DNA of 63,814 bases, the filler included, from Octopus bimaculoides (taxonomy: Eukaryota): assembly GCF_001194135.2 (NCBI RefSeq). It is 5 parts of 4 records of this genome, joined end to end, with 100 filler letters (N's around TTAATTAATTAA, not from the genome) between each part and the next. Parts side by side here need not be neighbours in the genome. Positions count along the whole stretch, not along the records: positions 24,964 to 54,860 come from NC_068985.1; 4 more parts are not named here. One strand, given 5' to 3'. A program made the position numbers and the translations under genes. The notes beneath the pieces were generated by a model. The model made no database searches and had not been told where the DNA came from. It saw only the letters and a program-made list of their open reading frames with translations. Below, one piece after another: positions 27,018 to 50,333 of this stretch (its first letter is position 1; the number at the start of each line of letters is the position of its first letter).

Positions 27018-28054
27018 AATTTTATGGTGACGATACACCATCATACGACATAGTCAAGCACTGACATCACCAGTTCAAATGTGGTCGGGCATCGGTGGAA
27101 ACTGCTCCTATTCCTGGACGATCACATTCCGCCTTTGATGACGACACTCGCCATAAAGTGGAAGCCGCCATTTTGGAGGATCGCCGCATAACTATTTGGC
27201 AACTAGCCCAAGAAGTGAAGATAAGTGTAGGGTCCGTGGAAAAAAATCATTCATGACCATTTTCATATGCGGAAATTGTCTGCACTATGGATTCCCTGGA
27301 TGCTCACACCTTTTCAGAAGTAGGAACGAGTCAATTGCTCCCAGGCTCTTTTGGTAATGTGCCAAGAAAATGAGGAGGACGTTTTCGGCTGACTTATCAC
27401 AGATTGAAACATGGGCCCATCATTATGATCCTCAGACTGAAATCCACTCGAAGCAATGGAAGTTTGATAACTCACCACCTCCAAAGATGGCTCGTGTCCA
27501 ACCCTCAGCATGCAAGATGATGCTCAGTCTTTTGAGACCAGCGCAGAGTAGTAATGATGGATTTTCTGGCAAAGGGCATCACAATTAATAGGGCATATTA
27601 TGCTTCTTTGCTACAGAAATTACGGGACACCGTCAAAGCAGAGAGGTGTGGCATGCTGACCAAAGGAGCCCGCTTCCTCCAAGACAACGCCCCACTTCAC
27701 ATTGTGCATGTTGCCCAGATGAAAGCACACTCCTGTGACTATGAAATCCTTCCTCACCCCACTTACTCTTCCGACCTCGCACCATCTGACTTCCACCCCT
27801 TTCCAACCATGAAGTCTTTTTTGAAGAGGAAGCACTTTTCGGATGACGATGAACTTATTTCCGAACTAAAATCTTGGGTCCAGACGCAACCTCCGACTTC
27901 TACAGACGAGGTCTTCACAGCTGCATAAAGCGATGGGAGAAGTGTGTCACCATTAGTGGTAGCTATATAGAGAAGGACTAATAATTATGCCAAGTTTCGT
28001 TTATCCCAGTCCTTGGGAAGTGGGTCAGGGGAAACCTTTAATGAGCACTCCTCG
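27018..28054 (+). mobile_element. mariner transposon (DD34D), degenerate; 5' end lies in the gap
   Basis: ETWAHHYDP, QDNAPLH and HPTYSSDLAPSDFHPF, with 34 residues between the last two D. Right end ...ATGAGCACTCCTCG followed by TA (28055-28056). Confidence 0.93.
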
Positions 28055-30476: not shown

Positions 30477-32476
30477 CTCTCTTCCACAAGTCGCTGTGAT
30501 ACCGTACATGGCTGTCGCTTTTCATATCTGAGTATCGCTCTTTCTAGCACCGATTCTTCAGCCTTACCTGACGCGGCGACATATACCAAAATACTGCCTC
30601 AATTGGTGAGATATGTCTCTTCTCCACCATGGCCTTGATGATGCGATGGTGTCTCTTCGCGATTCCATTTCCACTCGGGCTATACACCGTTCTGAAGAAG
30701 CGGTTCACGTTCCACTTAGCAAGCATTTCCTTCAGAGTCTCCGAACGAAATGCAGTGTCGTTGCTCATCAGCAATTCATCTACAGGGCCCCGCTCCAGCA
30801 ATATCTCGTTCAGGATTCGGGCAGCTTCGTCTGGAGTCCCCATCTTAATTTCCCTCCATATCGTTATCCTCCCCGGTCTGCAGTCGACCATCGAGAGATA
30901 TGTCCCCTGCCGGTAGTGCGTCACATCCGCTGCCAATCGCTTCCAGTTGTGTTCCCCTGAGATGTTTCTCGCCTTGTACACACCCAGAGTGGGGTCAGTG
31001 GATTGACACCTGTCACAAAGCCCGACCAATTTCTGAACGCTCGTCAAGTAACGTTGGAGTCAACTTTCCTGGTTAGATACAGGGTCCTATCCACTCCCAT
31101 ATGATGCATGGTATGCAATCTTCTGAGCTCCGAGTTACTTAGCCGACACACGGCACTTATCCGCCGCCCCGAATCCTCTGGCACCGCTAACCAGGCTTTC
31201 TTCATCCTGGTTAGGATGTCTGTCTATTCCTTTCCGAGGGCACAATGATCGCGCTCAATTTCAAGCAGAATTCAGCAGCTAGCTCTCCCAGAATCCCTAA
31301 AAGGCGCTTTATTAATGTCTCTGCCGCCTCTTTCGTTCGTACTCTCCTCTCATCGGCGATCACTGATCCCACCCATCCAACTACGCAGTCCCCATCTCAG
31401 GATCAGATTCACTCCCTTCAGCATTGCATCCAATTCAGCGACGTTGATTGATGGTAGTCATCCGTTTTTCTGAGCCAGGCTGTATCCTCCGCTTCGACAC
31501 CCACTATTTCCAGAATGATCCCTATCTCTATACTACTAGCATCGTACTATATGGTCCCGTTCTACAATTTGGGCACATACAAGCTTCCTATTTCTGGGTC
31601 TTCTGCTCTTACCCTCTCTAGGACCTCTCACATCATAGCCATTGTCTTCTCTCCCACTGTGTCCACCCAGTTTGCTCCGTCCGCTCGTCTTTTGTCGTAG
31701 CTACATGCTGTTCGGAGTCACCCCGCGATTAGATACTGACCCACCAGTCTCCCACACATCGAGAACGGTCCTCGTTTGTTCACGCTGGTGCCCAGTACCG
31801 GAATCTCGTTTCCTCTCCGAAATACCAACACACCCACCTTGTCTCCCTGCAGCTTGAGCCCCAATGAAAGCTCCTCCTACTATCGCCTCCCGATGTTTCA
31901 CATTAAGTCCTAACTTACTTATCTTAGTTTGGCAAACGCAGATTATGGACCTCTTATAAACGCTTTCTTTAAGCGTCGTTCGACCTTCTCAGCATCCAGT
32001 TCGCTTCGTCCATTTGGAGGTACAGAGCCAACGCGTTTCCCTTCAAATACAGTGCTATGAGACCTGTCACATTCTCAATGTCTTGCAGTCTGACCACCAC
32101 CCTGATCTTCCGAATCCAAGCAAAAACATCTTTCTCGCCACAGAAGGGTCAGATGGCATTGCTACTGGACCTTATTTTCTGACATATCGTAGAAAAAGTG
32201 CACGCCAGCCGAAGAAGCTTATGGTATAGAGGGAGAAAAGCACAGTTTACCTACCACGCGAGTTCTCACGCAGCGTCGATCCTTTCCAACTGGGATATAG
32301 CCGTAGGAACCCTGCCTGCCTAACCTCTGCCTAGAACCTAACTTCAAATTCCCTCAACTCACGCGGCGAAGCACATCCGTCCGAACAGCCCCAAGGCGAG
32401 AGAGAGCCATCATAGTCCTGCCTCTGCTCACGTGACCTCCCTCGCTCCTCTGCTTCCAGTTCACCTCATCTCCGCA
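29790..32476 (-). mobile_element. Gypsy element with two diverged LTRs (~29790-30041 and ~32240-32476) and an internally deleted gag-RNase H-integrase
   Basis: The LTRs share ACCTAC..GCG.GTTCTC.CGCAGC.TCGATCCTTTCCA.C.GGGATATA..GTAGGAACCCT. A poly-G tract at 30042-30052 is in the PPT position and the 5' LTR starts TG at 32476. Integrase ORF 30544-31047 (ADVTHY...MVDC, SNDTAF, SPSGNGIA); RNase H DASS...WLRK; RT appears deleted. Confidence 0.88.
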
Positions 32477-35779: not shown

Positions 35780-37500
35780 AGTTAACACAAATTCACATTT
35801 GAAACTTAAGGGAAATCTTGCATGCTTTTACTGTTCCTCTCACAGATTGCACTTGTAATGTACGAATTAGCCGGTTGATTTCTTTCTGAAAATCCCAGTT
35901 TATCCAGATTCTCCTTTAAGCATTTACTAACAAAACCTAGTGCTCCAATTATTATTAGTATGAATATGAATTCATAGTCTGGATATAGAAGCTGAAGGTT
36001 TCGAAGTAGTTGTCCATAGATATCCTCTTTTTCTTTGATTTTCAAAGAGATATTTATATATGCAAGGCAGCTAACCTCTATGATGGTACATACCTTTGCC
36101 CTTCTGTCCCAAACAACAATATCTGGCCTGTTATGCTTACATTTGACAGAAGTCTTGATGGGAATATTCCACCAGCATTCCTTGAGTTGGTGTTTATGAA
36201 TGTATTCCATAACAGAGGAATTTTCTAAGTTTATTTCAGGACAGTCTTTTTTGCAAGTGGCATTGTAAATTGTTTTAACAACAGCATCGTGCCGGATAGA
36301 GAGGTAGTACCGTGATGACATTTTAGAACAACTGCTAATCACATGCGTAATGTCTTCCACAGAAACATGACATAGCCTACACATGCGGTTGCACCTTGGG
36401 ACTGCAAGAGCGTCACTGTCTCTCTTGTTCACCAGATACCTTATTGCAATCTCCTGCTCCTGGATTGCAAACGCATAGCCTTCAAAGTGTGATGTGATGT
36501 AGTGGTCTTGTGTCCAAGAGAGGCTGCGCTTCGTGTCAATTCTACTGTCTTCTTCAAGCTTCCGGACAACATACCCATGCATGTTCTTTTTATTGTATGC
36601 TGAGTGCTTTCCATCCAGGTCTTCTCTGAAGTAAGAGAGCCCGGCTGTTTTGGGGCTGTATAGGAGATCATCAGGAAGGGAGTGTTTCTTGAGGAGTTCA
36701 CTACCTACTCGTACAATGTTGCTCACTTCACTTTTCAGCATTGCATTAATATATTTATTTTTGCTGCTGTTGTTTAGCAGGTGCTGCCTGATGATACCAT
36801 ACAGTATTCGAAGGTCGTTTGCACTGATCTCAAGCCTCTACCACCTTCATTTCTTTTTAGGTAGAACCTATCAACATCACTGTTTCTGTGGAAGTTCCCA
36901 GTTGTTGTCAGGATTTTGTGGGTTTTGATATCTATGGAATGGATTTCCTCTACAGACCAATCAAGTATCCCAAATGTTGGGATCAGCACTGGTACTACAA
37001 TGTATTGTGGGATATTGTTTTGTTATAAGAAGAGAGTTCCGACTGCCACATTTTTCTAAGTCTGGTGTAATATTCTCGGGTCACCCTATCTTTATTTACA
37101 GTGCCTTCATATGATACATTTTCATCTATGCCTAGTTACTTGTAACATTCTTTGTGTGGAATGGGGGAGATAGAGACCGTTGATGCACAGGCTTTGGGTT
37201 TGGGGGACTGACTTTCCTCGTTCTATAACCAAATATGAACATTTCTTTTGGCCAAATTCCATGCCTGTATCAGCTGAAAATGTTTTTTGGCATTGTTAAT
37301 ACTTTTAGCATAAATCTTGAGGTCGTCTACAAAGAAATTATGAATTACATTGATATTTCTAGCAGTTGAAGATCCTAGCATATAACTATTTGTTTTCTGC
37401 AATAAGAATGATAATGGATTCAGTGCCAAAATGAAAAGAAATACAGAAAGACTATCTCCCTGGTTTATTCCTTTTGTAATGCCTATACAATTATTCTATT
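35780..37500 (-). mobile_element. R4/Dong-type non-LTR retrotransposon, 5'-truncated (RT end, CCHC knuckle, RLE endonuclease)
   Basis: RT QGDSLSVFLFILALNPLS and FFVDDLK; LKRNEGGRGL. ORF 35806-36741 carries CRLC..EDITHVISSC, RHD and NRPDIVV..EV...KEK, the RLE-type architecture. Confidence 0.9.
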
Positions 37501-38779
37501 CTCAGTTGTAAGGTGCCGCATAGTTGGACTGAACTTGGAACCATGTAGTTGGGAACACACACCATAAATTCTTAGACTTAAAAATCGTTAGGTTTTTCTA
37601 GTTGTTTAATGGCTACAGCAGAGTAAAATGGTTTATTTAGAGAGTAAAAATCACGTTAACTTTTTATCAAACTATACTCGATTTGATTCGTAAATGTATG
37701 TGGTCAATTTGACTAAGAATTAATTTCACTCTACATATACCTCCTAACACAGTAGAGGGAGTGTGGTGGGGACTGCGTAACTCTGTATTCCACAGCTACC
37801 ATTTAAAACTGTATTTGTTTGCTTATTTGATTATAGTTTTCACTCAACCTGAACAAGAAAAATTTGAATCGGATTGCTGAATCAGATGAAACTATAGTAA
37901 TAAATGATGTCGTCTGTTTTCTCTCTATCGCATTTGTAATTCTATCTTCCGACGTTAACCTTTGCTTCATGTTCTCCTCTGGTTTAACAGCCGGCACAAC
38001 TAACTATCCGGCGTGAATATATGTTTACAAAATCTCCACATTCTATTTACAAGACAGATGTCAACAAACAGACGTCTTATATTTTATCTTCCTTATCTGT
38101 GCCAGTAGAAAATTTGTCATTTACTGACAGGAGGCTGTCGTTTGTTAAGCTGTCGGAATTGCCAAGGAATACATTAAAACTTCTTCCAAAAAGATTGTTA
38201 CTTAGATTTCAAAAGCTTATTTCTTCCGAACGCCTCATTCCTTGCCTCTAAATGCCTATTTATCAACGTCAGTTTATTTTCAAATCTCTACATAGCATAT
38301 ATTTAATACAAAGAAGTCATTATTTGGCTGTATTTCAAAGAATATCAAATCATTTCGCACCTCTTAAGAATTTCCTAACCGCAGCCAATTGGTTTTGATT
38401 TCATTTTGTTGATATAGCATTGAGAGTCGCACCTGGTCACTCAGATAGAGGTTTCGGACAAAAGGTCGATGGTTCGCACCCCGCTTCCGGTCAATGATTT
38501 TCATTTATTTCTCAAATACTCTTAGCCACCACTTTACAAATGATGCTGTTATTGTTGTTTATCCTATCCTATCTTTCTTGTTTTTTGTTGGTTTGTTTTG
38601 TTTTTTGTTGGTGTTTTTTGTCATATCAAGGACTACATTGTCCATCGAATGTATCCTTCTTTATTCAAGGTGGTGGGTAAGATTTGTGGAAAATTGGCTA
38701 CTGTTTCTAGCAGACCGTGTGATCGCATAGAGTCACTCTTCTTCCCATCGTATCTCTTGTATTGGAATAATAGTCAACA

Positions 38780-39065
38780 ATCATTCGATGTCACGATTCT
38801 CTGAAATTGCGAATCAGCGTGATCAGCGAACCGAACCAATCACAAGTTCGCCTGGAAAGAATATTACCCACGTGATCATCAAAGTCTAGCTACGTCTATC
38901 ACGCCGAGGTCACCAGATATAGTTAGATTTTGATGATAACATAGGTAGTATTCATTCCAAGCGAAGTCGTGATTGATCCAATTTGCTGATCACGTGGTCA
39001 ACATTCCAGCGAATTACGACATTGGGTGATTGCTTGATATTCCGCTACATTCTATATAAATACCA
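38780..39065 (+). promoter_or_regulatory. Promoter-like motif cluster (2 CCAAT, 2 CACGTG E-boxes, TATATAAA)
   Basis: CCAAT at 38836 and 38978, CACGTG at 38869 and 38991, TATATAAA at 39053-39060. Locally CpG-rich, and no downstream gene was identified. Confidence 0.3.
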
Positions 39066-39125
39066 TAGAGTAGCGGTTCTTAACTCTTTTGTTTTTGTAG
39101 CGTCTCCTCCCACCTCTTTAAGTAG

Positions 39126-39430
39126 TTGTTCTCTCGGTTGTAAAGGTCGTGAGTTCGATTCCTGGTGGCGCGTTGTATCTTTGAGCAAAGCAAATTTATT
39201 TCACGTTGTTCCAGTCCACGCCGCTGGCAAAAATAAGTAGTGCCTGTATTTCAAAGAGCCAACCTTGTCACATCTTGTGTCACGTTGAATCTCCCTGAGA
39301 ACTACGTTATGGTTACGCGTCTGTGGAATGCTCATCCACTTGCACGTCAACTTCACGATCAAACTGTTCCGTTGATCGGATCTATGGGAACCCTCGTTGC
39401 CATAACCGACGGAGTGCCAGACAAACACCT
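39126..39430 (+). mobile_element. tRNA-derived SINE sharing its 3' module with family B
   Basis: B box GAGTTCGATTCC; 3' part GTCAC..GAGAACTACGTTA..GTTCCGTTGATCGGATC..GACGGAGTGCC matches 3472-3650 in reverse. Confidence 0.85.
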
Positions 39431-40110: not shown

Positions 40111-40254
40111 TGCAATATAGTTTTAATGTTCGTTTGTAGTAACTTCTAACATTCTTAATAAAATCATGAACGTTACAATATGTTATTATTCTCTCCTATA
40201 AATGTCTTGAGTCTTAATTAGAAAAAACTTTGAATGAAATCATGTTTCTTTCTT

Positions 40255-40445
40255 GAAATATTGGTTTCAAATTTTGGCATAAGGCCAGCAGTTTCGAGAA
40301 TAAATCGATTACAACGACCCCAGTGTAATCCAGAGAGGATGAAAAACAAAGTCGGCCCCATTTGAACCCAAAGCATAACGACAGACGAAGTGTCGCTAAA
40401 CATTTTGCCTGGCACGCTAACGTTTCTGCCAGTCCGCCGCCTTCC
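40255..40445 (-). mobile_element. SINE family A copy
   Basis: TTTCAAATTTTGGCATAAGGCC tail and GCACGCTAACGTTTCTGCCAG head in reverse. Confidence 0.8.
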
Positions 40446-40654
40446 TTTCTTGAATATTGGTCATAAATAGATATTAGTGAATAATGAAACAATAATACTG
40501 ATGAAAGAGAAAATGAAATTTACCGAGTATTTCATCTTTAATAAGACTAACTGTGAACTTTGGTGTCGTGGTAAAACAGAATATGAACGTTTGATGAAAC
40601 AGGAAAGAAGAAACCAATACTCGAGAGTTACCACAAACCACTACGAGTATGACG

Positions 40655-40868
40655 ATCTTTACGAGCCAACGAGAGATCTAAGACATGGTCATTCATTTTG
40701 CTAGAAAAGACAGTTAAATCCCTATAGACCAAATTCTATCATTTTAAGTCAGGAAAGGCCACATCAGATAACGTAATCCTACACACCTCTAATAAAAAAG
40801 GATGACTAGAATATTTTTGATCAGGAGTCTGCTCGATCAAAGTTGACTTGTCACTAAACAGCAACAAT
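40655..40868 (+). mobile_element. Copy of a recurrent (AAC)-tailed retroposon 3' module (other pieces near 25450, 28750, 38620, 42020, 43610, 47850, 48175, 49150)
   Basis: Recurrent motifs TGCTAGAAA, CACATT(A/G)GATAA and GATCA..GTCTGCTCGATCA..GTTGAC, ending in AAACA(A/G)CAACAA. Confidence 0.65.
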
Positions 40869-41344
40869 GTTGCTTTCTCTAAGCTCAGTCGTAAATCATT
40901 TGTCTTAGATGGACCCTTCGAAATTCTGCGAACCATGTTGAGAGGCATCTCTTTTCCACCCGATGCTCTCTGACAGCCAATGGCATAGCCAGGAGAAGAA
41001 GTAACGCGTCTAAAAAAAACGAACTCCAAAAACATCCAAGATTAGATAGGCTTTAAACCGGGGAAGCATGGTAATCCNNNNNNNNNNNNNNNNNNNNNNN
41101 NNNNNNNNNNNNNNNNNNNNNNNNNNNNNNNNNNNNNNNNNNNNNNNNNNNNNNNNNNNNNNNNNNNNNNNNNNNNNNNNNNNNNNNNNNNNNNNNNNNN
41201 AAATATCAACAGCAATAATTTCAAAAGTATGGAGCGATCTTCAAAAAGTTTCTCTATTCCATTAACTAAATAAAAATTAAAATGGGAGTGTCGAATCTTA
41301 TTTACTTTTATATCAATATTACAGTGTACTTATTATTCTTTCGC

Positions 41345-41550
41345 ATATATTAAGACGGCGAACTGGCAGAATCGTTAGCACGCCAAATAGAAATACTTAG
41401 CAGCATTTTGCTCTGCTTTACGTTCTGAGTTCAAATTCCATTGACTTTGCCTTTCATCTCATTCGTAGTCGATAAAATAAGCACCAGCGTCGGTGTAATC
41501 TACTAGGCCCCTTCCCCGACTTTCAAGCCCTGTACCTATAGCAGAAAGTT
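41345..41550 (+). mobile_element. SINE family A copy
   Basis: GGCGAACTGGCAGAATCGTTAGCACGCC...GTTCTGAGTTCAAATTCC...CTTTGCCTTTCATC. Confidence 0.85.
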
Positions 41551-41839
41551 TTTTTTTTTTTCGTACATATTTAAATTTGCATGCATTAACGGTTGTTTGA
41601 CGCTGACCTAAGCATATTTTTTCTTTGTTAGGGCGGAGTTGAGTAGATTGAATGAATTCTCATTAAGATCTACCCCCAACGGAATTTAAATTTAGAATCA
41701 AGAGAAATGGAACTAAATATTTAGTCCAGCAGTCTACTACTTGTTATTCAATCGCATAAAAGTTTGTAAATTTTGTTTTTAAAACTCATCAAAACAATTT
41801 GAAAAATTATTTCTCACATTAGTAAAAAGCTACAAAATT

Positions 41840-43580
41840 GGTAGTGTGAAGTCGATTGATTGGACAAGTCTCAGTAGATGACTGGTACTTATTTTATTGA
41901 TCTCGGAGAGATGTAAATCAAGGTCAAACCCAGCAGAGTTTGTAGTCAGAGAGTAAAGTCAAAGTTAAATTTTGTTGCTAAGCATTTAATCCGATTCTCA
42001 ACTGCTTTTGTCCACCTCTTCAGCCACGAGCCCAAGAAGGAACCTCTATAAGGTCCCTCGACATGTTGGTAATTCTTCAAATCATGGTTATCCGTCTTAA
42101 AGGGACATGCTGGTTACTATAATCGTTGGTTCCCTGCATACAGTTGAAATGTTTTTATTTATATGTCTGCTCGATCAACTATAGTTCATCTACACATCTT
42201 CAACAATTCTACGGGCTTTCTGCAAGTAATAAGGATTTCTTACATTGGCACAAAACCACAATTTTTCAGGTGAATGCTGCAGTCGATAGAATTGATCGCA
42301 TCAGAGCCCTTGGCACCTTATTGCGTCGTAAGGCTACTGTCGTGACACACGCATAACTTGAGCATTTAAATCTAGCAAAGCTCGTCTCTTTTTCTAGGTT
42401 TGATAAAGCTTATTTCTTCTAGAAAGAAAAAGAAGGACGAAAAGAAGATAATAATGATGAAGAAGAAGAAGAATCTCCCCAGTGCTGAAATGATATCTTA
42501 TCGACCCCCAAATGAAAAAAATACAAACTTGGCTATGGCGGGATTTGAACTCGGATCATCAGAATAAACAATGCAAGGCAATCTATTCAAAACGCCAAGA
42601 ACTCTTTCAGTTCGCCGCTTATTCTATTCATTATAGATTTGTGAAAGACGAAGTTGACATACCAGAATTTGAGATTGGAATGCAGACGGACAAAACTAAA
42701 TAGTGCAACATTAAGAGGCGAAGCTAATATTGGTTTCAAATTTTGGCACAAGGCCAGTAAGTTCGGGGGAGGACGGAAGTAGATTACATCGACACCACCA
42801 CCATCCCCTACCATCCAGTGTTCAAGTGGTTCAATGTTTAGCAACATTTCGTCCGTCTTAACGTTCTAAGTTCAAATTCCGTCGAGGTCGACATTATCTT
42901 TCATCCTTTCGGGGTCGATAAAGTACCGGTTGAGCACTGGGGTCGCTGTAATCGACTTAACCCCACCGAACTTGCTGATCTTGTGCCAAAATTTAAAACC
43001 AATATTAGAATAAAATTCCTAATGGTATTTTGTTATTGCCCTTTACGTTCTGAGTTCAAATCTCGACTGAATCAACCTCGACTCTCACCCTTCAACAAAA
43101 TAAAGAACCAGTTAAGCATTCTGTTGATTTAATCGACAATACTATCTTCCAAATGTATAACTTTGTAACAGTTTTGTCATTACTAATATCGTTTGTTTCT
43201 TCTGTTTGTCACAACACATTTCTTATTGGCTTCTTTATACTATCGTCATATAGATACAGTGTGACTACACGATTAAGAGGTCCGCTTCGCAAACGCGATT
43301 CACAGTTCGCCCCCACTGCATGACGTCTTGGATAAATATTTTCTGTTGCCTCCAGTTGACCTATACTTTCTGAGTGAAACTGGTTCGACGGAAAATGCAT
43401 AAAAGCTCGTCAAGAGGAATGTACATGTAATTCAAAAAATACAACCTTGTCACGCAATGTGCCATACTGATTCTACCAGAGAATTACATTAAGGATACTC
43501 AGTCACTAACACGTTAATTCATGAACAGATTATTCAGTTGATCGAGTAATTGAATCCTCATCGTCGAACGACAGGGATCC
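41840..43580. mobile_element. Dense cluster of SINE fragments of families A, B and C in both orientations
   Basis: Family motifs at ~41850-41990 (-), 42490-42620 (-), 42727-42820 (-), 42840-43006 (+), 43030-43140 (+), 43280-43410 (+) and 43420-43570 (-). Confidence 0.75.
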
Positions 43581-45396
43581 ACCACCACAGCCAACATTAA
43601 ATATGTTAACACTGATCTATTGTGCTCTCGTCGATAAGCACCAAATCTGCTCAAAACTTTCCAGCCGTAACTATTCCATCTTTATTTTCAGTATCTAGAA
43701 CTGTGTAAACGTTTGTAGTTGCAATTGTAAGTGATGACCCCATCAGCTAAATACCATCCTTGCCGTACTTGCTCTGTGGAAGTAAAATAAACCAAATCAG
43801 CTTCAGTATATATCTGGTTCTACAGTTATTGTCTTTGAGTCGGGGATGAAATACAAAGCCGACTCCGTTACGATTTGAAACCAAAGCATAAAATGACTTA
43901 TTTAAATACTACAAGACTTGCTATCAAGGAATCCAACGTTATTGCCCACCACACCACCATGAAGTAACATTCATAACCATCTTTCTGTTCTTTAGTTTTT
44001 AACGTTTCTGTTTCGGGCTTTTTGTTTTATTTTGTGTTGTTTTATTTTTTTATATATATTTTTCAAATTTCCACCTAAGAAATCTAAAGAGATAATTGTT
44101 TTCTGCATTAAACTTTTTTCTTTTTTTTTAATGCTTCTTTTTTTACATAACGAAATTTTAAAGCAGATGGTTTGTTAAGATATATGGAGATATAAATCAA
44201 ATCACAAACATTTCAAAAATTAAAATAAGAATTTGATGATTAAATAGTGATCTTGTTGTTCTTCTTCTTGTTATGCATTTANNNNNNNNNNNNNNNNNNN
44301 NNNNNNNNNNNNNNNNNNNNNNNNNNNNNNNNNNNNNNNNNNNNNNNNNNNNNNNNNNNNNNNNNNNNNNNNNNNNNNNNNNNNNNNNNNNNNNNNNNNN
44401 NNNNNNNNNNNNNNNNNNNNNNNNNNNNNNNNNNNNNNNNNNNNNNNNNNNNNNNNNNNNNNNNNNNNNNNNNNNNNNNNNNNNNNNNNNNNNNNNNNNN
44501 NNNNNNNNNNNNNNNNNNNNNNNNNNNNNNNNNNNNNNNNNNNNNNNNNNNNNNNNNNNNNNNNNNNNNNNNNNNNNNNNNNNNNNNNNNNNNNNNNNNN
44601 NNNNNNNNNNNNNNNNNNNNNNNNNNNNNNNNNNNNNNNNNNNNNNNNNNNNNNNNNNNNNNNNNNNNNNNNNNNNNNNNNNNNNNNNNNNNNNNNNNNN
44701 NNNNNNNNNNNNNNNNNNNNNNNNNNNNNNNNNNNNNNNNNNNNNNNNNNNNNNNNNNNNNNNNNNNNNNNNNNNNNNNNNNNNNNNNNNNNNNNNNNNN
44801 NNNNNNNNNNNNNNNNNNNNNNNNNNNNNNNNNNNNNNNNNNNNNNNNNNNNNNNNNNNNNNNNNNNNNNNNNNNNNNNNNNNNNNNNNNNNNNNNNNNN
44901 NNNNNNNNNNNNNNNNNNNNNNNNNNNNNNNNNNNNNNNNNNNNNNNNNNNNNNNNNNNNNNNNNNNNNNNNNNNNNNNNNNNNNNNNNNNNNNNNNNNN
45001 NNNNNNNNNNNNNNNNNNNNNNNNNNNNNNNNNNNNNNNNNNNNNNNNNNNNNNNNNNNNNNNNNNNNNNNNNNNNNNNNNNNNNNNNNNNNNNNNNNNN
45101 NNNNNNNNNNNNNNNNNNNNNNNNNNNNNNNNNNNNNNNNNNNNNNNNNNNNNNNNNNNNNNNNNNNNNNNNNNNNNNNNNNNNGAATTGTCAAAGACCT
45201 GCTTCAATTTTCCTAAAATTGAATATAAAATAAATAAAATAATGATGAATACACACGTACTTGTACATGAGGAACAAAATGAATAATAATAACAACAACA
45301 ACGTAATATAAATTTTAAGAAAGCCTTAAGGACTGAAACGTATAAAAGAATAAAAGAAAATGTCAAATGCTTTTGTGCGTGGCGTTTGGCCTACTC

Positions 45397-45447
<51 letters not shown>

Positions 45448-46594
45448 AGGCCATAAAGTTATGCTGTAACTGTCACTACTCTGATCATGATCTGATATTC
45501 GCTCTTTTTTATAGACAAATCGCATTCATTTAAGGCGCTCATATAATACCCTAACTTCAATAAAATATGAGGCGATATCTTACAGTTCTGTAAAATACTG
45601 CCAAACAAAAACATTATTTTCCAAGGAAAAACAGCTGTACGAAGTATGAACAGTTACAGCTCTATAAAAGACAAGAACAAAACATTAAACAAAATTTGTG
45701 ATTTTTTTTATATTTACTTCATATCTTGGCTTTCCATGGTCTAAATCCAAATCGACGAGTCGAAAGGAATAGGAAATTGTCAATCAAAAATAATAATGAC
45801 ATCGTAATTAAAGAAACAGATTATGGATGGTGAAAATGTAAGAATTGTAACCAAGAATCGAAACCTCGGTCTTTTCGTTCGTGTCCATTGTTCTTGGAAT
45901 TTGCACTTAGAATTTATAAGTTCAATCTGTCAAATTCGCCAACAACTTTGGTGAGACAAGAGTTGGATCCAGATAAACCCATTTATTTCCATTGTCAGTG
46001 ACCTGGTTCAACTTAAGCACAACTCTATTTTGAGATACTTACGGAAAACATTCTCTCTTTCTCCGCAACTTTCAGAGACGTAAAAGCTCTCTCTGCCTTT
46101 TTATTCTGCCACTTGCACATTACCTTTCAAATCATACCCTTATTGTTGAAGCACTCCCCAAAAATGAAAAGGGTACTTTGAATACACAAAATAAAAGTAA
46201 AAGACAACCAAAAACACCTTTAAAAATTCTTACCAGCACCTAATTACCCACCGAAAATTATATCAGTCAAAAAGTATGGTCGCCTTAACTGCAGAGCCTC
46301 CGGCAGCCTTAAATTTGAATCAAATCATACTGTAAAAATAAATTCACCTGTACATGAACAAATTTAATTATACTGTTAAATGTAAAAGGGGTAACAAAGA
46401 ATGCATTGAACAAACGAAAATTACCTTGAGAAACTGATTGACTATTTATTGTGAACAAATTCGAGATGGTATTATTAAACAGTTCCCACTAAATGAACAT
46501 TTAGACCTATGTACGCAAACAAATCCCCAAAATTCCAAGTCGACTCTACCTACTTTATATTTGTTCTGACAATACAGATCAAAAACAGACAAAT

Positions 46595-46658
46595 GAATAG
46601 ATATTTTAAAAATTCAAACAACGAATAGATATTTTAAAAATTCAAACAACGAATAGAT
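46595..46658. repeat. 28-bp tandem repeat, 2.3 copies (GAATAGATATTTTAAAAATTCAAACAAC)
   Basis: Units start at 46595, 46623 and 46651. Confidence 0.95.
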
Positions 46659-46741
46659 AAGCTATTACAACATATCGGAAAGATAATTCCCTAATAACTT
46701 AATTACCAAAATATTACTCTATTATTGTTTACACTCTCAAA

Positions 46742-46870
46742 CACTAGCGTAGTTAGAGTGTGTGCCGCCCGGGGCGGCCGTTCCGTTTGCCGCCCCCAGA
46801 CCCCCAAAAAACACATATTGCCTACAGCAGACCCAAAAGGGGTGTCCCTTTAAAAGTGCCGCCCGGAATT
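46742..46870 (+). mobile_element. hAT-type MITE fragment, same family as 39965-40110
   Basis: CACTAGCGTAGTTAGAGTGTG..GCCGCCCGGGG and CAGACCCAAAAGG..TCCCTTT..AAAG..CCGCCCGG. Confidence 0.7.
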
Positions 46871-48316
46871 TGAAATATACCGCCAGAAGTTGTTGTTGAC
46901 AAACAACAGCAGTAATTTTATTCAGCTGAATACACGTCATTGATTGGTTGAAATTACCGAAATACGACAACTTTAACACGAAATAACTTTGAAAATACAA
47001 ACATTTCTCAACAGCACTAAGAGTAAAAGATGTTTTATATGACACATTCTACCAGTGTCCGAAGTTTGAAAGAGTTTAGTTACAAAAAATTAATTTCTCG
47101 ATGTGCCGTTCAAAGGGTAAAGATCCGAAAAACGGTTACAATCAGCCAACTATGAGACGCAGCTTCCCTCGACTCTATAACTTTCACTAGCTCAATTTCT
47201 TTTCTCTTACAACATCTATGGTTTACTACTACGAGAACGTGTACACACATACAGGCCGAAATTAACCTTCGTAACCTCGCACGCTCTTTCAATTATATCA
47301 CACCTGCCCGTCGAGGCATGGCATTATATTAAGTAACAGTAAATAAATATTTCTTTACAACTTCGATCACTGTTCTTCGTTCATCTTGCACATCTGCAAC
47401 AGCAACACTCGTTACAATCGTTAACTGCCAACTCCAACATATATCACCACAAATACCGTTACACTGGTGACCACTGATTCCACCTTAACAATACCGTTAC
47501 AGATTTATAACAAAACCGCTAATTCGTGAAAAACAAATTGTAATAATCTTAGCTGTATATTGATTTCATTATTTATAAATTAACATTTAAACACACCTTG
47601 TAAATTAAAACTTTACATGACAAAGTATTTTAAAGATAAAAGCAATTGAGTGAGATGAAAATTTTTAAATATACTGTTTTATTTAAACCTCAAGATTCGG
47701 CTAGTAATTGTTTCTAATTTTGGCGATATTAAACTTCTGATGTTTTAGTGTTGGGAGATTTGACAAGTAGTCTTAGTGTAGAACTTTCTATAACTCTTTC
47801 GTAGTTAAATCTGAGTAGATTCTTTTAAATTTTGCTTTTATTGTGTTTTATTGTCTGATCCAGCTGAACAAAGGAAGGAGCCTCTGCGTGCTTACTCAAC
47901 ATGCTAGAAATAACGAACAAAACTCATTTGAATCACATCTATCTTGTGTTAGGATAGTACACATTAGATAATATTGAATTTAATTATTGGTAAACACTTG
48001 CTACATTCATACAGTGTAAGCACACACAATTTTAGTCTTCCAAAGTCAATGGACCATCTAGAAAAGTAGTCACATACTACGGACCAGTTGTTGTAGATTA
48101 ACAAAAGCAATCAGAACCTTTTCTCGTTTCCTTTCCTCCTCATTCTTCTTGACGTTCAATGAGTGGTATAGCTGGTTGCTATTATTTAGCTCCAGGTCAA
48201 TCCTGAATAAGTCGACCTCTGATCAAAATGTCATTCCACTCATGACCATCCGTATGTGTAAGTAGGATTACATTATCTAATGTGTACTATCCTTAAGCAA
48301 GATAGTAGGTGTGATC

Positions 48317-48964
48317 TGTAGGCAACGCTATTTGAAGCAGGTTCGCAAGCCTACAAAATATCCGTTGGAAATCAACGACAGTTATCTCTCCAGATGAATG
48401 TTCTAGAACAAACCAAGCGAACTTGGTTGGCTCCCCCTTTACTAGCTTACAAGGCGTAATTACTAAACGACACACCGGAGGGCGTTAGTAGCATGTCGCC
48501 TATTTAAGAGCGTATCCCGATTGAACTTTCTCTCTTTTTCTCTCGACACGACAAGGTCAACTTCGGAGAGAGAACTAGGCGCATGGATTTCGATGTTCAT
48601 TTCCTACCAGCAACTCGCTATGGTATTCTACGTCTAGTGCCCGTGGAAAGTAAATTTTGTAGCTTAAATTACTTCTATTTTCTCATTGTCATTGTGGAAC
48701 ATGGCAAGATGTTCAGAACCTTTCTTCCTCCCAGATGACTTTATTGAACATTGTATACTCACTGTATGAGTTCGTTTGTTACGCATCTGAATAAAAACCT
48801 TGGATACGAAATTGTTCCCGCACAGACATGAGTGTCGTTGTCACTTACAGCAGTCCAATTATTAAAGTGTTGACGTTTTCATTAGTGACATCCCTCGCTA
48901 AATTGGTGACCCCGACGTGATATTCTGCGGGTTTGCGAACCCGCTTCAAATAGCGTTGCCTACA
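48317..48964 (+). mobile_element. Solo Gypsy-type LTR, tRNA-Trp PBS and inverted copy of the LTR 5' end; 46-bp TIRs; 4-bp TSD
   Basis: TGTAGG...CCTACA termini; arms 48317-48362 and 48919-48964 are 41/46 identical. TATTTAAG at 48501, AATAAA at 48790, PBS TGGTGACCCCGACGTGAT at 48904-48921. TSD GATC/GATT; the empty paralog at 47931-47934 has a single GATT. A homologous LTR piece at 24270-24492 abuts Gypsy pol. Confidence 0.88.
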
Positions 48965-49384
48965 GATTCAAGTGCGTTTTGTTTGTAATTTCTAGTATGT
49001 CGAGTAAGCACGCAGAGGCTCCTTCCTTTGTTTGGCTGGATCAGACAATAAGCGACATCAGATATTCTTCAATTCGTTTTCATTGAGTCAATCCAATGAT
49101 GGAGCATTAGACAGACAATATAGTAAGGTTGATATGCAAAAAGAAGAGATAATCGCGGATGGGGCGCCTTTGGTCATAGCTCTCCTTAATCATCACTGAC
49201 CTGGGGCTAAACAGCATCAGTATCACGAAGAGTGACAGTTCACTGATGTAAACAATAAGAGCATTATCTAAGTGATGTGTTTTATTAACAATGATGAACT
49301 CAAATCATTCTAAGAACAAAAGCTGCAATAGAACAGTTTCTCGCTTCTGCGGAGAGATGTTTTTTAAACGCTAAGATAGACCAG

Positions 49385-49530
49385 TATATCTCGGCAAACA
49401 GAATGTTAGAGCGTCGAACAAAACTCCTGCGAGTTCTAAACACTGAGTTTAGATCCTGGTGAAATCAAATTTTCCTTTCATCCTTCCAGGGGTTCAGAAA
49501 ATAAAGTACCAGTGAAGTACTGGTCGTCAT
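49385..49530 (+). mobile_element. SINE family A, degenerate
   Basis: CAGAATGTTAGAGCGTCG...TTTCCTTTCATCCTTCCAGGGGTT...AAAGTACCAG. Confidence 0.65.
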
Positions 49531-50121
49531 TTTAATACTCCTGTAAAGCACTGAGTTTATAACAGAAGGGATTTTCTGGTGACGATGGAGGATTAAAAGA
49601 CAAAAATAAGAACGAAAGTAGATTTCTCCACCAGTAACCAATTTTTTCCGCAACTTTAAGCAATTTCTTCATTTCCTGTTGAACTATTCCCCTTCCCCAC
49701 CACACGCGCTGATATTTGCCGCTCGTTCTAGGCAAAATAAGATAGTTAAACTTATCTTTATTTTCACAAATGCTCAAAACCCCCCGCAACCACCTCTATC
49801 ACTGCTGTTAACATCAGCCTATCCTTCTTCTGTTCATGTTTGTATACATTTGTATGTGTGTGTGTCAATATTGTACAGTACGTATGTGTGTGTGTGTGTG
49901 CGTGCGTGCGTGCGTATACAATTAGATGCATGAATATGCTGAACTACGTGTACAGATATTAAATAGATATTATATGATTTATGTGTACAGACATTAAGAT
50001 ACATATTTGTACGAGACTCCAGTCTATGGCAGATAAAAGTTTCATGTGTTACACAGCTATTAGTTGAAGAAGCAGGATCGTAGAGTCACATAGTCGTAAT
50101 GATTAAACATAAAACTAAATA

Positions 50122-50284
50122 TGCGCAGGAGTGGCTGTGTGGTAAGTAGCTTGCTTACCAACCACATGGTTCCGGGTTCAGTCCCACTGCGTGGCACCTT
50201 GGGTGAGTGTCTTCTACTATAGCTTCGGGCCGACCAAAGCCTTGTGAGTGGATTTGGTAGACGGAAACTGAAAGAAGCCTGTCG

Positions 50285-50333
<49 letters not shown>
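50122..50333 (+). mobile_element. tRNA-derived SINE family C, well-preserved 5' part followed by (TA)n and a gap
   Basis: GCGCAGGAGTGGCTGTGTGGTAAGTAGC (A box), GGTTCAGTCCC (B box), CCTTGGGTGAGTGTCTTCTACTATAGC, and CTTGTGAGTGGATTTGGTAGACGGAAACTG. Confidence 0.9.

Follow-up and report, generated by a model that had tools for sequence, protein, structure and literature searches.

Two octopus elements in which an LTR and a tRNA-Trp primer-binding site are followed by an inverted copy of the same LTR: probable products of aberrant reverse transcription

The stretch of Octopus bimaculoides DNA analyzed here (63,814 nucleotides of RefSeq assembly GCF_001194135.2, hereafter the window) contains a 648-bp element, element 1 (positions 48317 to 48964), and a second, smaller element of the same design, element 2. 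In each, a long terminal repeat (LTR) is followed by a spacer of one or two bases, by a primer-binding site (PBS) complementary to the 3′ end of tRNA-Trp, and then by an inverted copy of the beginning of the LTR (element 1) or of the whole of it (element 2). Neither element has an open reading frame (ORF) of more than 60 amino acids or a second, direct LTR. The part of the window that holds both elements is a gap-rich draft scaffold (hereafter the scaffold), within which element 1 lies in a 5.1-kb block free of N's (45185 to 50333).

Element 1 has TGT...ACA termini, and both these and its span read as in the initial annotation. One spacer base separates the LTR from a further 61 nt (the 18-nt PBS and then 43 nt belonging to the inverted arm), after which the target-site duplication is reached. 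A repeat search returned inverted arms of 49 nt (48314 to 48362 and 48919 to 48967; 90% complementary, spacing of 556 nt), the three extra outer bases being included because the GATC flank is palindromic. The arms proper are 46 nt long and identical at 41 positions; they match perfectly over the outermost 22 nt, and each of the five mismatches is a transition, so that the earlier description of the arms was reproduced in every figure. The right arm contains a perfect 7-bp stem (GCGGGTT/AACCCGC), GC rich and with a predicted stability of −8.5 kcal/mol. The left arm has instead GCCTACA, which would pair perfectly with TGTAGGC at the end of that same arm. CpG-type transitions account for three of the arm changes, although both versions of the arm are structured.

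The PBS of element 1, TGGTGACCCCGACGTGAT, agrees at 18 of 18 positions with the complement of human tRNA-Trp as printed in PMC6379413, confirming with zero mismatches the complementarity first assigned to it. Position 19 is mismatched, the tRNA complement having T and element 1 having A. An identical 18-mer is in use as a primer for the PBS region of chicken endogenous proviruses. When the window was scanned for it with up to three mismatches, two matches were obtained against a chance expectation of 0.00; a false match with five mismatches was seen at 42876 to 42893, in a tRNA-like copy of a short repeat. The 3-nt microhomology described at the junction is also present, GAT at 48919 to 48921 against ATC at 48360 to 48362 (LTR positions 44 to 46), an overlap with a probability of about 1/64 if pairing was not needed. 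The arm had been said to begin after exactly 18 nt of PBS: the length of the PBS stands, whereas the arm starts inside its last 3 nt.

Element 1 is inserted into the right arm of a larger, outer inverted repeat (47848 to 47972 versus 48272 to 48316 plus 48965 to 49051); once the insert is removed, the host arms can be aligned along their full length, with 112 matches in 128 columns. In the uninterrupted arm the sequence is GTGATTCAA, containing the single GATT previously noted, and the filled site reads GTGATC(648 bp)GATTCAA. What was duplicated is at least GAT, or else GATT followed by one later transition. Because the paralogous arm supplies an internal empty-site control, a duplication of 3 to 4 bp can be taken as real, and it is only the exact length of 4 bp originally given that has to be qualified. 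The host repeat (47844 to 49055), about 560 bp long when the insert is disregarded, is an inverted-repeat element in its own right, with arms of about 125 bp (Kimura two-parameter [K2P] divergence of 0.11) and a centre of 299 bp; its ends read TTATTGTCTGATCC.../...GGATCAGACAATAA, possibly with TA flanks.

Element 2 was recognized from its PBS, the only other Trp-PBS-like 18-mer in the scaffold, which lies at the centre of a palindrome. Its LTR begins TGTAGCGG and is unrelated to that of element 1 except for the TGTAG start, meaning that two unrelated LTR families are represented within 26 kb of non-N sequence. The arms of element 2 are identical at 103 of 131 positions, with 23 of the 28 mismatches being transitions, and their K2P divergence is 0.27, compared to 0.12 for the arms of element 1 and 0.11 for its host repeat. 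Given the unrelated LTRs and the different arm divergences (0.12 versus 0.27), the two elements represent separate events of different ages. Depending on where a 4-nt indel is placed, the junction of element 2 shows either an ATC match or no match plus one extra A. That an independent element should have the same hinge makes a systematic reverse-transcription error likelier than a freak rearrangement. The features of both elements are listed in Table 1.

Stretches resembling tRNA flank element 2 at about 38440 to 38500 and 39140 to 39215 (plus strand; T-arm-like GGTTCG.../GAGTTCGATTCC), and the element's flanks share short direct repeats (38726 to 38743 and 39064 to 39081). ARAGORN called no tRNA in these flanking stretches, which may be heads of short interspersed elements (SINEs), and Rfam and tRNA scans of the scaffold returned no matches.

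Table 1. Features of elements 1 and 2 and of their insertion sites, in window coordinates
Feature	Position	Strand	Remarks
Element 1 LTR (U3-R-U5) plus 1-nt spacer	48317-48903	+	Starts TGTAGGCAAC
Left inverted arm, element 1	48317-48362	+	LTR nt 1-46; microhomology to the PBS end in ATC, 48360-48362
TATTTAA (TATA-like), element 1 LTR	48501-48507	+	From sequence
AATAAA, element 1 LTR	48790-48795	+	From sequence
GT-rich tract, element 1 LTR	near 48830-48842	+	From sequence
LTR 3′ end CGCTAAA, element 1	48896-48902	+	Followed by spacer T at 48903
PBS, element 1	48904-48921	+	Pairs without mismatch with the 3′-terminal 18 nt of tRNA-Trp, CCA included
Right inverted arm, element 1	48919-48964	−	Reverse-complement copy of LTR positions 1-46; GAT overlaps the PBS
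Left target-site duplication copy, GATC	48313-48316		Paralogous empty site has a single GATT
Right target-site duplication copy, GATT	48965-48968		Same empty-site comparison
Empty paralogous site, AATC (reverse complement of GATT)	47931-47934		From alignment of the host arms, insert removed
Element 2, 292 bp	38758-39049	−	LTR plus TC, Trp PBS, whole LTR inverted
Element 2 LTR plus spacer TC, 134 nt	39049-38916	−	TGTAGCGGAATA ... CTAACTATA, then TC (TGTAGCG...ACTATA, TC)
PBS, element 2	38915-38898	−	16/18 to Trp, two transitions
Inverted copy of the whole left part, element 2, 140 nt	38897-38758	−	Ends ...CCAATACA
Flanks, element 2	AGAA 39053-39050; AGAG 38757-38754	−	From sequence

To score the fold-back, the 80 nt that follow the PBS were compared with the 1,500 nt that precede it, the latter taken as reverse complement. 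Scores of 33.5 (element 1) and 37.5 (element 2) were obtained, with a maximum of 12.5 among 200 shuffles. That either element is an assembly artefact or a chance arrangement is extremely improbable. In favor of an artefact, the scaffold is a draft with many N runs; against this, the arms have diverged by 11% and 21%, which excludes a chimeric read, as chimeras give perfect palindromes, and element 1 sits in a gap-free block with a duplication checked against a paralog. Chance is countered by the 18-mer expectation given above.

An exact scan of metagenome contigs for the Trp 18-mer gave 120 loci, of which 16 continue as a tRNA and 104 do not. About 110 of the 120 had enough flank to be scored, and none of these showed a comparable fold-back, the best score being 13.5. 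These contexts bear on the idea, named in the initial annotation as a possible refutation, that the parent elements naturally carry an inverted LTR start after the PBS, for instance in the leader, so that elements 1 and 2 would be left-end fragments inserted by way of an internal pseudo-attachment site. Short stems do occur near the PBS in some metagenome elements, accounting for scores of up to 13.5, and would be in keeping with a leader structure; no inverted repeat of the size seen here exists in the other scored Trp contexts, element 2 inverts its entire LTR and leaves no space for a leader, and integrase works at DNA ends rather than at internal sites. We regard this explanation as very unlikely. 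Some metagenome contigs have two to four tandem Trp-PBS copies 27 to 39 nt apart (L128, 165 to 264; L106, 3044 to 3141; likewise L074, 5079 to 5206, and L065, 3286 to 3330), and in L023, L083, and L075 a partial second PBS end (TCGACGTGAT) directly follows the PBS. Such tandem or partial copies may reflect other types of strand-transfer error.

As to the origin of the LTRs, the CsRn1-like elements of Ty3/Gypsy have a tRNA-Trp PBS, LTR ends of the form TGT...AAA or TGT...ATA, and target duplications of 4 bp that show no sequence preference (PMC2582038), and the 3′ integrase-recognition motif of the CsRn1 LTR is MSYYAMA (PMC3601003). The PBS matches are 18/18 in element 1 and 16/18, with two transitions, in element 2. 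Element 1 reads TGTAGGC...CGCTAAA, then T and the PBS, and the left arm of element 2 ends ...ACTATA, then TC and the PBS; the end CGCTAAA conforms to MSYYAMA, as about 0.2% of 7-mers would, and each arm of element 2 misses the motif at one position, a different one in each arm. The duplications are GATC/GATT, with the empty-site control, and AGAA/AGAG, matching at 3 of 4 bases and without a control. The TATTTAA and AATAAA motifs, which had been reported in the body of element 1 and were found there, together with its GT-rich tract, match the layout of TATA, AATAAA, and GT-rich sequence reported as conserved in animal Metaviridae LTRs. Taken together, the PBS, the TGT...AAA ends, and the 4-bp duplication make the initial reading of this body as a Gypsy LTR followed by a Trp PBS well supported, with a clade that can be named, on these sequence features, as CsRn1. 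Two direct LTRs enclosing a gag with CHCC motif and pol, as in a full CsRn1 element, are present in neither case: elements 1 and 2 are derivatives and not full members of the clade. Because an inverted copy of the LTR follows the PBS, both termini of each element are U3 ends.

There is no CA near the PBS of element 1 (...CGCTAAAT directly followed by TGG), while CA occurs 1 to 5 nt upstream of the PBS in 90 of the 104 (87%) metagenome Trp contexts that are not tRNA-like, and in avian retroviral contigs as well (nine viral contigs with the Trp 18-mer were examined over 25 nt on either side). The missing CA was dropped as evidence against an LTR, its absence being accounted for by the published CsRn1 end variants. 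In metagenome contigs L069 and L071 the bases CGCTAAATC and CGTTAAAT, respectively, immediately precede the same Trp PBS, and the order is pol end, polypurine tract, LTR, PBS, gag, the gag of L071 having a CHCC-like motif. The pol end of these two contigs (...DRLKP...) had raised a BEL/Pao parent, which was rejected in that the TGT...AAA ends, Trp PBS, and CHCC-like gag favor CsRn1.

Terminal inverted repeats (TIRs) of 40 to 270 bp that start with TGTNR, together with 4-bp duplications, are also found in the Ginger1 and Ginger2/Tdd DNA transposons, whose transposase is related to Gypsy integrase and whose targets are CCGG/CCGT (Ginger1) and RTATAY (Ginger2) (PMC2836005). The arms of our elements (46 nt in element 1, about 135 nt in element 2) begin TGTAG or TGTAT. 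Their targets, GTGATTCAA and TATAGAA/AGAGAT (two sites only), differ from those of Ginger. Of the Ginger-like character ascribed to element 1, the resemblance in TGTNR ends and 4-bp duplication holds, and the target preference does not (GATT, AGAA). The suggestion that such a unit might be remobilized as DNA found no evidence in either element.

Element 1 might nonetheless be one copy of an amplified family resembling miniature inverted-repeat transposable elements (MITEs), moved by a Ginger-type or integrase-like transposase, the fold-back having occurred only once, in the founder. The length of the TIRs, the TGTNR termini, and the 4-bp duplication match the description of Ginger; two such elements in 26 kb hint at abundance; and the perfect outer 22 nt with mismatches further in would fit selection on transposase-binding ends. 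The structural features of a MITE are there, with each element present as one copy in the scaffold and none in 82 kb of related DNA. The latter comprised three Octopus sinensis loci and one ENA contig, in which neither a Trp PBS (up to three mismatches) nor homology to element 1 or 2 was detected. The lack of further copies in these sequences and in the scaffold weighs against a mobile family, as do the targets GATT and AGAA, unlike those of Ginger1 and Ginger2, and the fact that neither viral nor metagenome contigs gave any match to the perfect 22-nt end of element 1. The longest stop-free frame of the LTR was also searched as protein, for spurious gene calls on other copies, and had no match. 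The only ORF in the scaffold with an integrase (rve) match, a weak one, lies at 30547 to 31223 on the minus strand; its Octopus sinensis relatives are joined to RNase H and reverse transcriptase domains, and this linkage identifies the ORF as belonging to a retroelement rather than to a DNA transposon. Retroviral-type integrases are, moreover, not known to excise integrated DNA. An amplified MITE-like family is for these reasons unlikely. The integrase family of the 30547 to 31223 ORF was also considered as the parent of the elements and ruled out, the loci of its relatives within these 82 kb having no Trp PBS with up to three mismatches and no homology to the elements.

During normal reverse transcription, plus-strand strong-stop DNA begins with the first base of U3, takes in R and U5 and then 18 nt of the primer tRNA, halting at the modified tRNA base 58, and is transferred to the other end of the minus strand. 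No other molecule of the process has a free DNA end at the 3′ boundary of the PBS, as in the minus strand this position is internal. Since it is there that the inversion starts, a template switch of plus-strand strong-stop DNA is the best account of the data, and in both elements the inverted copy reaches the outer TGT/ACA terminus exactly, which fits run-off at a 5′ end. On balance, we think it probable that both elements are inserted aberrant reverse transcripts of CsRn1-clade Ty3/Gypsy retrotransposons that arose through such a switch.

The structure of the elements, the nature of their LTR and PBS, the place of the junction, the duplication, and the occurrence of the design twice are established by the sequence; the events that follow, from the switch and its acceptor strand to second-strand synthesis and joining by integrase, we infer. 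The strong-stop 3′ end (...GTGAT) would prime on an LTR strand of plus sense, which could be its own or that of a second, nascent plus strand. For element 1, pairing would involve the 3-nt match at ATC, 44 to 46 nt from the U3 start, with a switch point just past the 7-bp hairpin at LTR positions 21 to 38, a plausible pause site; in element 2, pairing would be adjacent to the PBS. Extension of the 3′ end to the 5′ end of the acceptor strand would give a product with a U3 attachment end (TGT.../...ACA) at both termini, which the element's integrase could then insert with the 4-bp duplication typical of the clade. Mutual extension of strong-stop DNA and a shorter nascent plus strand, paired through their 3′ ends, would produce a blunt duplex in one step, whereas a purely intramolecular snap-back would lead to a hairpin or panhandle in which only one end is duplex, not the normal two-ended integrase substrate. 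The initial annotation had strong-stop DNA folding back on its own U3. The hinge at the PBS 3′ end agrees with this, and a switch within the same molecule and one to a second plus strand would leave the same sequence. Insertion by a CsRn1-type integrase is suggested by the 4-bp duplication and by targets unlike the Ginger preferences. Integrases accept identical ends at both termini in vitro.

The junction of element 1 can also be read differently, i.e., as what remains of a full palindrome like element 2 after most of the right arm was lost by a deletion between two GAT sequences, one at the PBS end and the other inside the inverted LTR. Element 2 shows that a complete palindrome occurs, palindromes of great length tend to be unstable and to suffer deletions by slippage, and a 3-nt microhomology lies at the junction. 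The deletion would, however, have had to start exactly at the PBS end, a coincidence of about 1 in 600 that the switch of a free 3′ end does not need, and palindromes usually lose their centre symmetrically, which would take the PBS as well. A secondary deletion therefore appears quite improbable.

Several observations count against the strand-switch origin favored here. No parent element was found that would confirm TGTAGGCAAC as the LTR start or full-length copies as free of the inverted arm, and the scaffold contains no second copy of either element. The 5′ end of element 1, TGTAGGC, agrees with the CsRn1 5′ consensus TGTGGYG at only four of seven positions. All five arm mismatches of element 1 fall within the inner 24 nt (p of about 0.03 under uniform decay), and four of the five build a perfect hairpin in one arm only; from this placement, the arms could have been nonidentical at birth. 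In element 2, the duplication matches at three of four bases without an empty-site control, and the junction is blurred by age, the inversion beginning within about 4 nt of the PBS end. Finally, in the literature searched, the conversion of a switched single strand into a two-ended duplex is not documented for any element.

The integrase fragment, with a zinc-finger region, and a gag-like stretch, only about 1.6 kb apart, make up a degenerate retroelement (30547 to 32148, minus strand); its LTRs might be concealed by the N gaps on its borders, and its best relatives are Octopus sinensis proteins with 56 to 74% identity. A mariner-type transposase fragment (27554 to 27928, plus strand) gave weak Transposase_1 and DDE_3 matches. 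Several copies of a short repeat with tRNA-like parts occur in both orientations at 40249 to 43014; the repeat resembles abundant octopus SINEs. An intact 311-amino-acid ORF (35806 to 36741, minus strand) had no Pfam match and no record in an exact-protein look-up, and we take it to resemble the C-terminal part of a non-LTR retrotransposon protein. A GC-rich, transposon-like reading frame at 52394 to 54034 (plus strand) has the motifs YIG...F..R...H and ...C.LC..E, which we assume to be GIY-YIG-like, and is interrupted both by shifts of frame and by extended runs of low complexity (repeats of N/S/T/A). A host gene was considered for the ORFs at 52.4 to 54.0 kb and set aside, as they look like a transposon ORF broken by the low-complexity runs.

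With both insertions, a by-product of reverse transcription would have entered the genome with the same integrase-recognition sequence at either end. Reverse transcription that is left incomplete may thus give rise to small elements with inverted ends. Should such units prove common or mobile, inverted-repeat elements and hairpin-forming DNA would have a new source, repeat annotation could be misled into filing a piece of LTR as a DNA transposon, and the frequency with which the second strand transfer fails would be recorded in genomes; should they be rare single events, they would still provide clean natural cases of an integrated strand-transfer error. LTR retrotransposons and the integrase-encoding Ginger elements share end sequences and enzymes, and no intermediate between them was described in the literature searched. 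A more far-reaching proposal, to which we give a low probability, is that CsRn1-type Gypsy elements of the octopus lineage repeatedly turn plus-strand strong-stop DNA into units with two U3 ends that serve in trans as substrates for enzymes of the integrase family. If true, it would mean a one-step natural route from an LTR to a TIR element and a living model for the interconversion of Ginger-type DNA transposons and LTR retrotransposons, and some repeats now filed as nonautonomous Ginger or unclassified TIR elements may have this origin.

No element with the order LTR, PBS, and inverted LTR was met with in the literature searched, which left subscription journals largely uncovered, so that an earlier description is possible. 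The closest known elements are CsRn1, PwRn1, and AgCR (PMC2582038), with which ours share the Trp PBS and the TGT...AAA (element 1) or TGT...ATA (left arm of element 2) ends. A spacer of 1 to 2 nt, a 4-bp duplication without preference, and an LTR with TATA, AATAAA, and GT-rich tract are likewise common to the clade. In contrast to its members, both elements lack a second direct LTR, gag, pol, and polypurine tract, and their PBS is followed by the inverted LTR start or the whole inverted LTR. Ginger elements differ in having no LTR signals and no tRNA primer site, and no Ginger transposase is linked to the ends of element 1 or 2. Solo LTRs and miniature terminal-repeat retrotransposons (TRIMs) are, like our elements, small noncoding derivatives of LTR retrotransposons with a target duplication. 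A solo LTR has neither PBS nor inverted arm, whereas in element 1 the spacer, the PBS, and 43 nt of arm separate LTR and duplication; in a TRIM, a PBS and a polypurine tract are found together with two direct LTRs. DIRS-like elements have a tyrosine recombinase and an internal complementary region, with no target duplication and no tRNA primer site; a target duplication and Trp PBS are present here and coding capacity is not.

Two precedents concern the process instead of the product. Self-primed minus-strand strong-stop DNA is well described in vitro for retroviruses, and there too the strong-stop 3′ end fails to make its proper transfer and is extended on a strand that has its own polarity. 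The known cases are minus-strand dead ends; those proposed here would involve the plus strand and were integrated with a duplication. Ohshima and Okada, in 1993, reportedly proposed a strong-stop-DNA origin for tRNA-derived SINEs. Their scheme calls on minus-strand strong-stop DNA and a whole tRNA and gives no inverted ends; it has in common with ours that an unfinished reverse-transcription intermediate, carrying primer-tRNA sequence, founds a repeat.
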